Origin: Octopus bimaculoides
Lineage: Eukaryota
NCBI RefSeq assembly: GCF_001194135.2
Contig: NC_068991.1
Span: 8,359,885 to 8,423,884 of the forward strand
Length of the DNA: 64,000 bases
Direction of reading: 5' to 3'
The position numbers and the translations under genes are program-made. The first letter of the stretch is position 1. Each line of letters opens with the position of its first letter. The notes beneath the pieces are model-generated. The model was not told the DNA's origin. It worked only from the letters and a program-made list of their open reading frames with translations, and searched no databases. Below, in pieces: positions 3,642 to 38,301 of this stretch.

Positions 3642-4670
3642 TCATTTTAAGTAAGACAGATCATTGTTATGAGTTTGTACACATTGGGGTGGATATATAT
3701 CCTCAATCTTATATAAAATGTCTTCATTCAGAGTGGGGGATCCCTCAACGGGTTGTAGATATAATATTTTGTCCATGTTTTGATTGCAGCAATTAGTTTT
3801 CCTCCAAATGAAATCAGTGTTCTCCAACTGCATGTTATTTACAGGTGCAGTCCCAAAATTAAAGTTGCTATTTCTGTCAAGAAATCCATGACTGCTTATA
3901 TTAATATAAGTGCCATAGTTGATGTTGCTGTTTAGTCTTGGAAAAGCATTAAAATCAATGTTGTTAGTGAAGCTGGTACCATTACTTACATCAAGAGGTG
4001 CACCAAAGTCAATGTTGCTATATATATCAGTAAGTATATCATCCTGTTTGATGTTGTTATTTACATAAAATGATGAACCAAGATTTGTGTTGTCATTTGC
4101 AAAAGACGATGTTTGGGAGTTCTCATTATCACTCCAGTCAAAAGCAGTCTCAGAACCAGCAGAATCATAACAAGGTAGACTATGCTGTGAACCAGACATA
4201 ACACTGGAAGGAGACATGTTTGAAGTGTCTGTGCAGCTATTGAAATTTCCACTGTTATGCAGATTATTTGATCCAGGGAAGCAATAAAAACCATTAAAGT
4301 TTGAAGAAATTTTAGATTGATCATATTTTTGATCAGGAACATTTACAGAAGAGGTTGCTTCAAAGGAAGCTGATGGATAATAAATTGGCTGTTGATAAGT
4401 ATTCAATGTATTTGTATGTGCGGGTGTGTTATTGATAGGATTATCAATCATGTGATTTCCTTCGTATGTTTCCTTTTGGTGATATGTTTGCATTATCCAG
4501 TTCTGAGTAATATCCCTGAAGCTAGAATGGCCGTAAAGTTCATTGTAGTTGATGTCTCTAACTTCATCTGTGACATTAGACAATAGCTTTTCCATATTTT
4601 GTTTCATATCTGTAAGTTTCCTTACAATACTTTTTAACATTATTTGTTTTTTTTCTTCTTCGAAGAGATT
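3642..4670 (-). CDS. ATF3/Fos-like bZIP, coding exon 3 (leucine zipper + ~300-aa N/S-rich tail + stop)
   Basis: Acceptor tcaatttcag| at 4672-4671, phase 0. Reads NLFEEEKKQIMLKSIVRKLTDMKQNMEKLL..., in frame with the supplied 332-aa ORF 3642-4640; stop at 3642. Confidence 0.85.
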   Translation of the reverse strand, partial: NLFEEEKKQIMLKSIVRKLTDMKQNMEKLLSNVTDEVRDINYNELYGHSSFRDITQNWIMQTYHQKETYEGNHMIDNPINNTPAHTNTLNTYQQPIYYPSASFEATSSVNVPDQKYDQSKISSNFNGFYCFPGSNNLHNSGNFNSCTDTSNMSPSSVMSGSQHSLPCYDSAGSETAFDWSDNENSQTSSFANDNTNLGSSFYVNNNIKQDDILTDIYSNIDFGAPLDVSNGTSFTNNIDFNAFPRLNSNINYGTYINISSHGFLDRNSNFNFGTAPVNNMQLENTDFIWRKTNCCNQNMDKILYLQPVEGSPTLNEDILYKIEDIYPPQCVQTHNNDLSYLK

Positions 4671-5252
4671 CTGAAATTGATAAAAGAAAGAAAATTAAAA
4701 TCCAGGTTTTTATTCAGCATTTCAGAAAGTTTAGTATATAAAACATGAGAGGTTACAATATGTTGTCTGTTTATGTTTTATAAGTCTTCTCCATTACATG
4801 GACCACTTTGACTGGCAATTTTATTGTAAGCAGGAATCTTTCAGAGAGATATTCTTCCCATTGTGTATGTTACCTATGAGTTTGCAAATGGTGATGTATG
4901 GACTTTGACAGGGATGTATAACTGATTGATTGATTATTAATGAACTGATCAATCAAAGAATTGAATAGCTCATTGGTTAAATAGTTGACCAATTAACAAA
5001 TAATAAAGAAATGAAATAGACCCAGTGTGTGTATGTTTATCATTGGCCCAATGACCCTCCCTAGATGCAACAAAGTCTCATATAATATTCTTCCGTCTAA
5101 ATGATGACACTAGCACCATCTCAAAACATTGCCCCAAACTAACATACCAGCGAGTAATTGAAATACAAATAATGTAATATATAGCTCAAGATATTCCTCT
5201 GACAAGTATAGAGGTTAACCCACACAGTATTAGTAAAGTATCGACTACTTAC

Positions 5253-5360
5253 AGCTTGAGAAAGCCTTTCTTCCCATTTTTTCTTGTTGCGACATCTAGC
5301 AGCTGCTCTCCGGTTCTGTTCTCGGCGTTTCTCTTTCTTTATCTCTTCATCAGGTCTCAA
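5253..5360 (-). CDS. ATF3/Fos-like bZIP, coding exon 2 (basic DNA-binding region)
   Basis: 108-bp phase 0-0 exon (gtgaacag| ... GCT|gtaagt) encoding LRPDEEIKKEKRREQNRRAAARCRNKKKWEERLSQA. Has the invariant N-x7-R. The 36-codon length and boundaries match the basic-region exon of vertebrate FOS/ATF3. Confidence 0.9.
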
Positions 5361-5969
5361 CTGTTCACAAAGACAAAGCAGTCATCATTAACATTCAGAA
5401 TAAATCCCCTCTTCCACCACCAACTTCATTATTTTCATTATTCGCTTCACGTGTCATACGCATGCTTACACATTCCGTCATTCTTTTATTCCTTATATCA
5501 TCATCATCATCATCATCGTTTAACGTCCGCTTTCCATGCTAGCATGGGTTATATATATCCCTGGACTGGCTCTTGTGCAGGTGGCACATAAGATGTACCA
5601 TCCTGAGCGTGACCGTTGCCAGTACCGCCTGACTGGCCTGGTAGGGTTTTCGAGCAAGATCGTTGCCAGTGCCCCTGGACTGGCTCTTGTGTGGGTGGTA
5701 CATAAAAGACACCATTTCAAGCGTGGCCGTTTTCGTGCGGGTGACACGTAAAAGCACCCNNNNNNNNNNNNNNNNNNNNNNNNNNNNNNNNNNNNNNNNN
5801 NNNNNNNNNNNNNNNNNNNNNNNNNNNNNNNNNNNNNNNNNNNNNNNNNNNNNNNNNNNNNNNNNNNNNNNNNNNNNNNNNNNNNNNNNNNNNNNNNNNN
5901 NNNNNNNNNNNNNNNNNNNNNNNNNNNNNNNNNNNNNNNNNNNNNNNNNNNNNNNNNNNNNNNNNNNNN

Positions 5970-6032
<63 letters not shown>

Positions 6033-6034
6033 TG

Positions 6035-6074
<40 letters not shown>

Positions 6075-6303
6075 AAAACGGACAGACAGACATAAACACA
6101 CACATACACAACAGGCTTCTTTCAGTTTCTGTCTCCCAGTTTCACTCATAAGGTATTAGTCAGTCCTGTGGTTAGAGTAGAGCATGCCACCAGACAGTAT
6201 CCATACTGTGGTATCCGGCAGGTTTGAAGATAAAACAGGTAGATTATTTTGGCCAGATATGGCCAGTTTAAATGCTAAAGGGTTAACAGGTAGTAAAACT
6301 CAC

Positions 6304-6474
6304 TTGATATTTTTTCTCTCCAGTAAATGTAGTATTAATCGGGTTCAGCCCATTGGCATGTCTTTTATTCAGGATATTAAGCTTCAAATACTGCTTGGTC
6401 ATAGGACTAGCAGAATTCTGCAGCTGACATTGTTTTAGGCATTCTTCAATCTCCGGATCAAGTCTTGTATACAT
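6304..6474 (-). CDS. ATF3/Fos-like bZIP, coding exon 1
   Basis: Strong acceptor (ttttttctttccttctttaaattag|) at 6481, then caaaATG at 6474; donor CAA|gtgagt, phase 0. SPMTKQYLKLNILNKRHANG resembles the ATF3 N-terminal motif TPFVKEELRFAIQNK. Confidence 0.8.
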
Positions 6475-7689
6475 TTTGACCTAATTTAAAGAAGGAAAGA
6501 AAAAAAGCTGAATATATATATATATATATATATCAACCACAGATAATTCAAAAAGAAAGAAAATGAATAATTTCAAATGTCATTCATATTGATTTTCTTT
6601 CATTTACAATCGGGCATTGTCATGAGGCTGGAAGAAATGCTGCCAGGCATTTTGTCCGAAGCACTGATAATTCTATAAACTTTTGAATTTATTGGAAGTC
6701 ATTGGCAATCTAGCATGATATTTGGAGCTAGGGTTACCATGTGAAAACTATTTTAAAGGTTGTTCAGGTTTTACATTTTGGGGGATTAAATGGGAAATAT
6801 TTGTTTTAAGGAGGTTTAGTAACACAGTTTTAAAACTTTGTTGACGTGTTTAGATGTTACTAGAAATGCATTGAGAAATAACTAGATAGTGTAGATAGAG
6901 TGGTTTGTGTCAAATTCCGCATGAACTCTCATTGTAATTTTACAATCTACGTCTACTTATCAACTAAGAGCAATGTTCATTATTACATTGTATGAAGTTC
7001 AAAATATCATTTAATTTCACTTTGTTTAACAATTATGTGGAGGAAAAATATATTCACTTTCAACTGTTTTGTTGCCAGTATTTCTAAAGAGAGAACATGC
7101 TAAAACTGATGCCTTCACATGGAATTTTTTTACCGAAAAAACTATGGTAAATTTATTCATTTTCTTTTTTGATTTCATTGCATGATCTTTCATCTTTTAT
7201 CTTTTACTTGTTTCAGTCATTGGACTGTGGCCAAGTTATGGAGACTGTTATGGAGACTGTGGCCAAGTTATGGAGACATAAACAAACCAACACAGTTTGC
7301 CATGTGGTAGTGAGGGGCGGGCAAACATAAACACAAAGACACACGCAATATATATCTATATATATATCTATATATATATATATCTATCTATATATATATA
7401 TATATATACACACACATACATACATACATATATATATANNNNNNNNNNNNNNNNNNNNNNNNNNNNNNNNNNNNNNNNNNNNNNNNNNNNNNNNNNNNNN
7501 NNNNNNNNNNNNNNNNNNNNNNNNNNNNNNNNNNNNNNNNNNNNNNNNNNNNNNNNNNNNNNNNNNNNNNNNNNNNNNNNNNNNNNNNNNNNNNNNNNNN
7601 NNNNNNNNNNNNNNNNNNNNNNNNNNNNNNNNNNNNNNNNNNNNNNNNNNNNNNNNNNNNNNNNNNNNNNNNNNNNNNNNNNNNNNNNN

Positions 7690-11407: not shown

Positions 11408-11465
11408 AGATATATTTCCAAAATTTTGTTGCTTGTCTCTGTCCACGACTTCCTGTGAAATGAAT
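11408..11465 (-). other. Predicted non-coding first exon of the bZIP gene
   Basis: Donor TCT|gtaagtg at 11407. Inr-like TACATT/TCATTT at 11467-11458, about 31-35 nt downstream of TATATAA. The next exon has an acceptor before its ATG, so an upstream exon is required. Confidence 0.5.
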
Positions 11466-11488
11466 GTAAATAAACAAATGCACATGTA

Positions 11489-11566
11489 ATTATATACAAA
11501 TATTTATAAAAATTCCAAGAGGTGAGTCAGAGGAAAACACGTGTGATAATTTGTTGATGATGTCAT
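11489..11566 (-). promoter_or_regulatory. Predicted core promoter of the bZIP gene
   Basis: TATATAAT (11496-11489), TATAAATA (11508-11501), AP-1 TGAGTCA (11523-11529), E-box CACGTG (11538-11543) and CRE-like ATGATGTCAT (11557-11566), all within 80 bp of repeat-free DNA. Confidence 0.5.
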
Positions 11567-36656: not shown

Positions 36657-37891
36657 AATGAAAATACTTTCCTTTGTTATTTAAAGTTCTTGGAAAATAA
36701 TCCTAATGATGGTTTCGTCTGGTCTGCTTTGGGCCATCTTTATTTACAAAAACCACAACCCCAGACCACACAAGCAAACTTTTGTTTTAAACAAGCTGTA
36801 AAACAATCTACTAAAAATAGTCTCTCTGTCAATGAATGGTATTATATCGGTCCTTTTGTCATTGGGAAAATGGAACTGGACGGAGATCCTTTGGCTGCCT
36901 ATGGTGGCATCCGTAATGTTTCATTATATCGTTTGAAAAAAAATATTAAATATTTTTCTGAAATTGTTCCTAATGGGGAAGTCAAATGGAAAGTTTATCG
37001 ACATTTAGGAGAATCCTTGATCCGAATTTCTCCTGAATTAGAATGGAATGATTTGGTTGGATCTCTTGGTTCTATGGGTATCACTGAATGGCAAGGTTGG
37101 ATTATTGGTGAGTTTGCTATCAACGAAAAAGAACAAACAGTTATTATTCAATGCCATGGACTTACTACTGCCTATGTAGATAAAATTCCAATTGTCGGAG
37201 ATGTCTATCATCGAGATCAGCTTATGTTCAGCATTACCCTCACACGCGGAATCCATACACTTTATGCAAAATTACGTGCTAAAGTAAACGCAAATTTTAA
37301 ATGTGTTTTCAAGACAGTTAGTACAAGTTTTGATATACTTTCTCCAACAATGGTACCTGATCTAGTCGATGGTTATTTGTTCAGTCAATATCTAAGTATT
37401 CCTGTGATTAATTTCCTGGGCAACAAATGGTTAAAGAATATTGGAGTTTCTCTCAAGAGTCAATCTTACGGTCAGCCAATTACTTTGGAATTGGTTGATA
37501 AACGGAATATAGCTCCTGGTCAAATTCTTGGACTAATCATTTCCATCACTTCTCCTCATAATCGTCTCACAAATGGCTGTTATTCAACAGGGATCGATTT
37601 GGTTCTGGAAATTTCTACATCAGAAGGTAGCATGGAATCTGCACCAATAAATCTTCGGTGTCGAAAACTTAATCAGTCTTTTCTATTTTCGTTCATTGAT
37701 CATGATGGTTCTGTCCAACAAGGAGCTGCTATCGCACCGATTTCTAAATGTGTCTCAAAGCTTTGCCCGGTCCTTCTCACTCTTCATGGAACTTCTGTAC
37801 CAGCACAAAACCAGGCAGACAGTTACAAAAGAATGGTTGGAAAAGATTTTGAATTTGGATTTGACACAATCTGGCTTTTGGCACCAACAAG
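36657..37891 (+). CDS. Secreted hydrolase exon 3 (TPR-like motif, beta-rich region, start of hydrolase domain)
   Basis: ctcttcag| ... AG|gtaaat, 1235 bp, open frame containing the 401-aa ORF. TPR-like FLCYLKFLENNPNDGFVWSALGHLYL...ANFCFKQAV; oxyanion-type LLTLHG. Confidence 0.92.
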
Positions 37892-38301
37892 GTAAATATA
37901 TTATTTGGATGTAACTCTTCACAAAGGTAAAAAAAACACACTAAGAGCACAATAAAACATATAATAAAGTACAGATCTTATATTGCACTGACAGTTCAAT
38001 ATACCAAGTCAGATGGTATTTCATTATGTGTTGTATTGTACTCTTCTTGTTATGTATTATTATTATTATTATTATTATTATTACTGGAAGGCAGCGAGCT
38101 GGCAGAATCATTAGCACGCTGGACAAAATGCTTAGTGATATTTTGCCCATCGCTTCGTTCTGAGATCAAATTTGGCCGAGGTTGACTTTGCCTTTCATCC
38201 TTTCAGAGTTGATAAATTAAGTACCAGTTGTGTACTGGGGTCGATGTAATGGACTACCCCCTCCCCCAAATTTCAGGCCTTGTGCCTATAGTAGATAGGA
38301 C

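Follow-up and report, generated by a model that had tools for sequence, protein, structure and literature searches.

A probable ATF3-related bZIP transcription factor gene of Octopus bimaculoides with an atypical zipper and a long, partly conserved tail

The question raised by the locus described here is whether a gene that combines an intact basic leucine zipper (bZIP) basic region with an unusual zipper and some 300 additional residues is a novelty of the octopus lineage, a decaying copy, or a member of an older family. The gene lies on the minus strand, with its coding exons between positions 3,642 and 6,474, of a stretch of 64,000 nucleotides (nt) of Octopus bimaculoides DNA (NC_068991.1, positions 8,359,885 to 8,423,884), referred to below as the window, which is the same sequence as the chromosome-level record GCA_001194135.2 CM046611.1. 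The initial annotation had interpreted it as a lineage-specific, remodelled paralog of the ATF3/Fos family with an altered choice of dimer partners and possibly an acquired activation domain. The comparisons presented below point instead to a strongly diverged member of an older, multi-copy molluscan ATF3-related family, and the probability that the locus is a functional bZIP transcription factor gene of this family, which was multiplied in molluscs, is estimated from its sequence at about 0.75.

Three coding exons joined in frame (Table 1) produced a coding sequence of 1308 nt, corresponding to 435 amino acids (aa) plus the stop codon, and the spliced product was 100% identical to the O. bimaculoides protein XP_014786529.1, which reproduces the splice model first proposed. 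The basic-region exon encodes aa 58-93 (LRPDEEIKKEKRREQNRRAAARCRNKKKWEERLSQA), is in phase 0 at both ends and includes the codon of Ser91, the first d-position residue of the zipper (d1), at 5261-5259, while the acceptor of the last coding exon (...ATTTCAG) is preceded by a long pyrimidine tract. The sole difference presented by the JGI/UniProt model A0A0L8FVJ6 (463 aa) is an added upstream exon near 11485-11408, whose end (...ATATCT) is followed by the donor GTAAGT, with the GT at 11407-11406, and which is joined to the AG at 6482-6481. This exon is coding in the JGI model (MCICLF...GNIS), and the NCBI protein begins at the ATG of the next exon. The predicted gene is therefore shown, at the level of these sequence comparisons, to comprise four exons, namely one upstream, one with the ATG, one of 108 bp for the basic region and one for the zipper and tail, and, given the upstream exon, the early proposal of an ATF3/Fos-type bZIP gene with this layout was supported. 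No alternative zipper exon was found in intron 2, whose translation in three frames yielded many stops and no open reading frame (ORF) with heptad leucines. In the whole window, with 35% G+C, only three ORFs of at least 150 aa without runs of N were observed, and because long ORFs are so few and that of the octopus bZIP is intact in a second species, it goes beyond what chance would provide. UniProt labels the protein as a bZIP domain-containing protein, and the names 'bromodomain and WD repeat-containing DDB_G0285837' and 'homeobox protein 2-like' found in databases are artefacts of its Asn-rich, low-complexity tail. Literature searches returned nothing on the octopus bZIP gene.

The basic region (...KRREQNRRAAARCRNKKK) was found to be intact, and the bZIP signature N-x2-AA-x2-[CS]R, placed after a Lys/Arg cluster, is present in KKEKRREQNRRAAARCRNKKK, in which N73, A76, A77, C80 and R81 occupy columns that are invariant in the family alignments. 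When the Arg of 'CR' (Arg81) is taken as position 0, the d positions +10, +17, +24, +31, +38, +45 and +52 are S, E, L, L, M, V and I, and the a positions from +7 to +49 are E, L, Q, V, K, L and V. This register was obtained without gaps both from the HMMER comparison with c-Fos (2wt7_A) and throughout the zipper of an alignment of 19 family sequences, confirming the basic region and the series S, E, L, L, M originally read for the first five d positions. A gapped register, suggested by MAFFT with few sequences (gaps of 18 or 4 residues after CRNKKK), was dropped in favour of the ungapped one, and +10 is Ser and +17 is Glu whatever the alignment. The part of the zipper encoded by the basic-region exon (aa 86-93, 5276-5253) belongs to a single helix together with aa 94-133 from the last exon, and AlphaFold2, run with a 25-sequence family alignment, predicted a continuous helix over residues 60-139, with predicted local distance difference test (pLDDT) values of 94-98 up to residue 130. 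The description of the zipper as half-degenerate was refined on one point: d1 and d2 are not hydrophobic, but d3-d7 are, and a seam runs on from +24 to +52 with L, V, L, K, M, L, V, V and I at successive d/a positions, extending two heptads past the end of the zippers of the relatives. Its atypical nature was confirmed by a very long branch and by BLOSUM scores, in which the octopus zipper was the most divergent of 145 relatives (24 or less against any non-octopus sequence, 237 against itself).

A second conserved element lies about 27 residues upstream of the basic region, where the motif [TS]P..K..L[KR]..I...[KR]R..G of the molluscan sequences is represented in octopus by SPMTKQYLKLNILNKRHANG. 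The K, L, I, R and G of this motif fall in invariant or near-invariant columns, and a motif of this type was present in 104 of the 175 proteins retrieved. AlphaFold2 predicted two short helices across it, with a helix at residues 23-40 reaching a pLDDT of ~85. A family profile composed of the N-terminal motif and the bZIP was then scored against 1.84 billion representatives, giving 2021 matching proteins at E<=0.001, of which 244 reached E<=1e-10; most matches span both elements.

These matches comprise two types. Type 1 presents RRE[RK]NK..A..CRNKKKE[RK]T, with L, L, L, L, L and H at the d positions; its tails are short (median 22 aa), H[RK]PTC is often present, and by these features it is the canonical ATF3/JDP2 type. 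A catfish JDP2 also matches the profile. The octopus protein carries RREQNRRAAARCRNKKKWEE where the canonical type has RRE[RK]NK.AA.[KR]CRNKKKE[KR]T, and neither five Leu at d nor H-[RK]-P-T-C is found in it. The KCRNRRRELTD and zipper of Fos are likewise absent from it, and Fos-type CRNRRR was found in none of the 150 best family matches, among which ATF3/JDP2-type sequences with H[RK]PTC are present. Type 2, with 91 representatives, has R[RK]EQNRRAA..CR, which the octopus matches exactly. The named members of this long-tailed 'REQNRRAA' clade, as defined here from the profile matches, are molluscan (Biomphalaria, Bulinus, Lymnaea, Physella, Babylonia, Littorina, Haliotis, Aplysia, Nucella, Patella, Plakobranchus, Gigantopelta, Pecten, Argopecten and Ruditapes), and a single species can have several copies, with at least three in Littorina, two in Babylonia and two in H. 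asinina; the pairs in Babylonia and H. asinina, and two of the Littorina copies, lie on contigs of equal length.

Within type 2, the first half of the zipper proved to be relaxed well beyond the octopus. At d1, Leu is found in 31 of 91 representatives, followed by Val (23) and Ile (9), with A, K, T, N, E and S also occurring, and Glu occupies d2 in 13 of 91; d1 and d2 are both non-hydrophobic in five of the 91, the octopus included. Together with the I, E, L, L, M of abalone, these counts give no support to the view of degenerate d1 and d2 positions as an octopus novelty. In contrast, other positions are nearly constant: of the 91 representatives, 78-84 have Leu at d3-d5, 71 have Asn at +21, and 82 have His at +45, after which comes S-G-x-C or C-x-C. 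The octopus keeps L, L and M at d3-d5, but it has Gln at +21 and Val at +45 (Leu in O. vulgaris) and lacks a Cys in the next 3-6 residues. On these alignments, Ser at d1 and the loss of the family's Asn +21, His +45 and Cys cap appear as the octopus-specific features.

The nearest relatives were sought by neighbour-joining, in which the proteins of O. bimaculoides and O. vulgaris shared a very long branch beside Haliotis LOC124121576 (430 aa) and the corresponding H. asinina protein (434 aa). A relationship to the gastropod genes of Haliotis and Patella is supported by shared characters, namely the start M-x-T-x-[LV]-D-x-E, the segments 'RH..GL' and 'LR[PD]DE', Glu at d2 and Met at d5 (with Haliotis) and the linker (with Patella, PINTTFTGEKKYQL in octopus and AINTSATEEKNYKL in Patella). 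Moreover, the introns of the Haliotis rufescens gene have identical positions and phases: ...PVRHE is followed by GT, a 36-codon exon encodes LRDDEK...TAIEN, and after the next AG the sequence resumes with VYDEE..., the remainder being in one exon. The order of exon 1, ATG exon, 108-bp basic exon and zipper exon known from ATF3/JDP2 genes was in this way found in both octopus and abalone, and the long, poorly conserved tail shares an exon with the zipper in both (309 aa in octopus; aa 100-430 in the last abalone exon). As a separate observation, the last 16 codons of the H. rufescens homolog (L003, 17408-18247), NGMYTAAGTGTHLTTC, are repeated four more times past its stop.

The tail was described initially as Asn/Ser-rich and ~300 aa long, and this was confirmed by a count of 309 aa from +45, with 15.2% N and 11.7% S. 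It is net acidic (30 D+E against 12 K+R) and contains 36 F/Y/W residues in 295 aa. Besides the longest island that is fully conserved between the octopuses (Table 1), a second one, NNIDFNAFPRLNSNIN, was identified. The Trp-centred acidic motif of the octopus, SETAFDWSD (ETAFDWSD), has counterparts in Haliotis (GETTTWSD), Patella (CETTNWSD) and others. Of 41 long tails, 7 contain W-S-[DE], where composition-matched shuffles lead one to expect 0.85 and none of 2000 shuffles reached 7, a count inflated by the relatedness of the tails, whose shared descent is the point at issue. Over the whole tail, the hhalign comparison of octopus with hygrophilan snails was not significant (E = 0.3), only a short motif being shared. 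Because the W-S-[DE] motif recurs in the tails of relatives, the octopus tail is at least partly ancestral, and not an octopus acquisition. The claim of an acquired tail is also contradicted by tails of at least 200 aa in 37 of the 91 family representatives, reaching 601 aa. With its conserved acidic and aromatic islands, the region looks like one for activation or co-factor docking.

A cephalopod-specific ATF3/Fos paralog, remodelled after duplication and provided with a new 300-aa activation tail, would accord with a zipper far more divergent than that of any relative, with the long branch, with an overall tail lacking significant similarity to those of hygrophilan snails, and with the retrieval of no squid or nautilus ortholog. 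However, the N-terminal motif, the exact REQNRRAA, the linker and the intron positions are common to gastropod genes, long tails are common in the family, ET..WSD also occurs in abalone and limpet, and the pair of Glu at d2 and Met at d5 is found in abalone as well, which makes such a paralog improbable. The lineage-specific origin initially suggested was accordingly abandoned, given that gastropod and bivalve proteins sharing the N-terminal motif and REQNRRAA.xCR are found among the 244 relatives with the best scores. The gene is not an ordinary single-copy molluscan ortholog with the same tail either, since gastropods have multiple copies and the overall tail sequence is not conserved.

The O. 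vulgaris ortholog allowed the constraints on each region to be compared. Its exons (L002, 22403-22573, 23495-23602 and 24446-25477) use the same splice sites, and its ORF is intact, with 436 codons and one in-frame insertion of 3 nt in the last coding exon (1032 nt). The product of the ATG exon is identical in 55 of 57 residues and that of the last exon shows 79.6% identity, with Ser at d1 and Glu at d2 identical in both species. The ratio of non-synonymous to synonymous substitution rates (dN/dS), calculated by the Nei-Gojobori method between the two species from small counts, was 0.13 for aa 1-93 (4 non-synonymous to 7 synonymous changes), 0.33 for the zipper at aa 94-140 (8:5) and 0.69 for the whole tail (63:22), its first half presenting 0.50 (31:15). 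The N-terminal motif and basic region were thus under strong purifying selection, the zipper under moderate and the tail under weak selection, a pattern that reads as a constrained DNA-binding head with a fast-evolving disordered tail that keeps its frame. The regional dN/dS values, together with an ORF intact in both species, indicate that the gene is probably functional. A relaxed or pseudogenising copy, in which the zipper no longer dimerises and the tail drifts neutrally, would explain the high tail ratios, which exceed 1 in the last 145 codons (1.1), the loss of Asn +21, His +45 and the Cys cap, kept in 71 to 82 of the 91 relatives, and a sub-threshold Pfam score. Against this stand ORFs of 435 and 436 codons with canonical splice sites and one in-frame indel, where aligned intron stretches contain 13 and 50 gap positions; the low ratios of head and zipper and the persistence of islands in the tail; and an exon 1/promoter block that is 93% identical between the species with its four motifs unchanged. 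We consider a decaying gene very improbable.

The same ortholog served to interpret intron 1, which in O. bimaculoides holds an assembly gap of 210 N, flanked by a (TA)n microsatellite and, at its other edge, by a repeat-like stretch. The newer record CM046611.1 does not close this gap, as it has the identical 210 N, and the O. vulgaris ortholog was used in its place. In this second locus (OX597824.1), which is free of N, the junction between the ATG and basic-region exons is identical, the annotation joins ...GEKKYR straight to LRPDEE, and the intron of 921 nt, composed of (TA)n, a repeat and (TG)n, has no exon and is interrupted by stops in every frame. Since both flanking exons are made of whole codons (phase 0), the reading frame is independent of the gap. 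In addition, the distance from 'ANG' to 'REQNRR', 27 residues, does not differ between octopus and Biomphalaria, and no gap was opened against the octopus between the N-terminal motif and the basic region in the 19-sequence alignment. An exon hidden in the gap was ruled out by the O. vulgaris intron, the exon phases and the motif spacing, and translation of the readable parts of the O. bimaculoides intron in all frames revealed no zipper-like ORF. It was also observed that the stretch 5467-5759 beside the gap, to which nothing in the O. vulgaris intron corresponds, resembles a repeat inserted in one lineage, and that the gaps read in this region (5760-5969 and 7439-7689) are edged by (TA)n or (TATG)n microsatellites (5970-6048 and 7380-7438).

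Some results weigh against the assignment of a functional gene to the molluscan ATF3-related family. First, the Pfam model PF00170 bZIP_1 gave 22.9 bits, below its gathering cut-off of 27.6 (E = 9e-5), and the O. vulgaris ortholog matched bZIP_2 only, with 18.6 bits; relatives with Glu at d2 are also sub-threshold for bZIP_1 (abalone P0057, 22.8 bits; scallop P0043, 22.7 bits), and the threshold was passed by the relatives P0004, P0014 and P0038. Second, the neighbour-joining placement beside abalone had a bootstrap of 32/100, with Patella LOC126821261 as the next commonest neighbour. Third, the relatives bear automatic names such as 'kayak-like', 'c-Fos-like', 'ATF-3-like', 'fos-related antigen 1-like' and 'uncharacterized'. 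Fourth, the last 145 codons of the tail presented a dN/dS of 1.11 (32:7). Finally, squid and nautilus orthologs were missing from the results of word-indexed protein searches, which returned very few relatives and no other cephalopod; even the O. vulgaris protein, with 96% identity, escaped them at the first query, and their silence on cephalopods is not evidence of absence.

If the locus is a functional ATF3-related bZIP gene, its mode of action may be sketched as follows. The invariant N-x2-AA-x2-CR basic helix would read half-sites of the TPA-responsive element (TRE) or cyclic AMP response element (CRE) type, and the single long helix of residues 60-139 would pair with that of another bZIP. 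In the first two heptads, with Ser +10 and Glu +17 at d, the only core residue would be Leu at a2 (+14), and for this reason the stable part of the dimer should be the hydrophobic seam from +24 to +52. A homodimer would most likely be weak, given the Gln in place of Asn +21, the Lys at a position +35, a residue also found there in the canonical ATF3 type, and the lost His(+45)/Cys cap. The like-charged g/e' pair K20/K25 and the hydrophobic residues at g positions (I27, M34 and L41) would also oppose a strong and specific homodimer, and the octopus protein is expected to work chiefly in heterodimers with another bZIP of the AP-1/ATF type. The effector would be the long tail, which is acidic, rich in aromatic residues and predicted to be disordered, and which bears islands such as ETAFDWSD; most plausibly it would bind co-activators.

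A further step would be that the dimer interface was rebuilt in octopods, the hydrophobic core having shifted by two heptads away from the DNA fork and the specificity residue Asn +21 and the His/Cys cap having been lost, with partners other than those of the gastropod counterparts or an altered spacing or flexibility at the half-sites as the outcome. This is doubtful and is put forward only tentatively; if true, it would represent a lineage-specific rewiring of the octopus AP-1/ATF network. The same residues could also be accommodated by a regulator with a weakened zipper that is no classical DNA-bound dimer, acting as a dominant negative by titrating partners or pairing through its long helix with a non-bZIP coiled coil, to which a zipperless isoform spliced at 4569-4568 could add, analogous to the delta-Zip isoforms of ATF3. 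The Ser and Glu at d1 and d2 lie beside the DNA fork, the g positions named above are hydrophobic, and the internal acceptor is the one used in the O. vulgaris annotation, in which CAI9730595.1 (P0017, 139 aa) is shifted in frame and loses the zipper. However, the DNA-contact residues are invariant and strongly constrained, which argues for DNA binding, and the main acceptor has a much better polypyrimidine tract than the internal AG. The CAI9730595.1 protein maps to 4567-4451 in the other frame, where O. bimaculoides has a stop after 24 codons, and this model is probably a mis-prediction. Such a regulator is, on balance, quite improbable.

Regarding the surroundings of the gene, a promoter-like cluster of motifs (11501-11565; Table 1) is found just upstream of exon 1, within the block conserved between the octopuses. 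The window contains a single instance of a TRE followed by a TATA box, where chance would give 0.17, and TGACTCA alone is not enriched in it. The cluster is at most suggestive of an AP-1/CREB-responsive promoter. The longest ORF of the window, of 401 aa (36690-37895, plus strand), matched no Pfam domain and no solved structure, and it is probably a large exon of another gene. In both octopuses, a short-chain dehydrogenase gene (adh_short) lies ~5 kb downstream of the bZIP gene (L001 17643-18590 and L002 30420-31298, outside the window), with strand calls relative to the bZIP gene that are opposite between the two species.

Table 1. Features of the octopus bZIP locus, in window coordinates
Feature	Position	Strand	Remarks
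CRE-like element TGACATCA	11565-11558	-	Identical in O. vulgaris
E-box CACGTG	11543-11538	-	Identical in O. vulgaris
AP-1/TRE TGACTCA	11529-11523	-	Identical in O. vulgaris
TATA box TATAAATA	11508-11501	-	Identical in O. vulgaris
Upstream exon 1	11408-11485	-	Located by tblastn of the A0A0L8FVJ6 N-terminus; conserved in O. vulgaris; 5' end approximate
ATG exon including 5' part	6304-6480	-	Acceptor AG 6482-6481; coding from ATG at 6474
Exon A (ATG exon), coding sequence	6474-6304	-	171 nt, 57 codons; donor GTGAGT
N-terminal family motif PMTKQYLKLNILNKRHANG	6349-6405	-	aa 24-42; counterpart of TPL[VI]KEELKxxIxx[KR]R in relatives
Intron 1	5361-6303	-	Holds assembly gap 5760-5969
Exon B (basic-region exon)	5360-5253	-	108 nt; acceptor ...GAACAG, donor GTAAGT
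Intron 2	4671-5252	-	582 nt
Exon C (last coding exon)	4670-3642	-	1029 nt; rest of zipper, tail, stop TGA 3644-3642
Zipper part of exon C	4551-4670	-	aa 94-133; Glu98 (4658-4656), L105, L112, M119, V126, I133
Internal AG	4568-4569	-	Equivalent is the annotated O. vulgaris acceptor (L002 ~24516); 103 nt into exon C
Predicted disordered tail	3645-4532	-	aa 140-435; AlphaFold2 pLDDT <50 from ~residue 177
Longest fully conserved tail island YDSAGSETAFDWSDNENSQTS	4107-4169	-	aa 261-281; W-S-[DE] motif; identical in both octopuses

The identification of an ATF3-related bZIP corrects the annotation of a sequence that is already present in databases under misleading automatic names, and it draws attention to an uncharacterised, multi-copy molluscan branch of the Fos/ATF3 group, in which the tails are long and disordered and the zipper is relaxed in its first half. 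Since ATF3, Fos and Jun respond to injury and activity, the octopus members may bear on studies of neural plasticity and regeneration in cephalopods. Besides, the octopus protein may offer a natural test case of how much of the N-terminal zipper a bZIP can lose. Current understanding of these factors is not overturned by the present findings.

Among known systems, the closest counterparts are the long-tailed molluscan ATF3-related bZIPs, such as Haliotis rufescens LOC124121576 (XP_046340545, 430 aa), Patella vulgata LOC126821261, the Pecten maximus 'fos-related antigen 1-like' and the Biomphalaria 'kayak-like' proteins. The octopus shares with them the N-terminal helix motif, the length of the linker, REQNRRAA.xCR.KKK, one long last exon that carries the zipper and a tail of 150-600 aa, and W-S-[DE] in the tails, and with Haliotis also the 108-bp basic exon, the intron phases, Glu at d2 and Met at d5. 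It differs from these relatives in being alone in pairing Ser at d1 with Glu at d2, in having Gln for Asn +21 and Val or Leu for the near-invariant His +45, in lacking the S-G-x-C or C-x-C cap, and in an Asn-rich tail that is alignable only in short islands.

Vertebrate ATF3/JDP2 present the CRNKKK signature and the same order of 5' untranslated region, ATG, basic and zipper exons as the octopus gene, but the type differs in its d residues (L, L, L, L, L, H), in RRERNK instead of RREQNRR, in a median tail of 22 aa and in its H-[RK]-P-T-C end. The exon C of human ATF3 is reportedly 108 bp long, and the motif upstream of the octopus basic region resembles the human TPFVKEELRFAIQNK. In Fos, the activation region at the C-terminus is long, and function requires heterodimers. 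The best solved-structure matches of the octopus protein were the bZIPs of FosB and c-Fos, which were weak (E = 0.005 to 0.03) and ungapped. Unlike Fos and Drosophila kayak, however, the octopus protein has an N-terminal motif of the ATF3 type, the His/Cys end of its family is also ATF3-type, and the 'kayak-like' names of its relatives are automatic. Human ATF3, whose gene consists of exons A, B, C, (D) and E, has 181 aa (PMC13606831).

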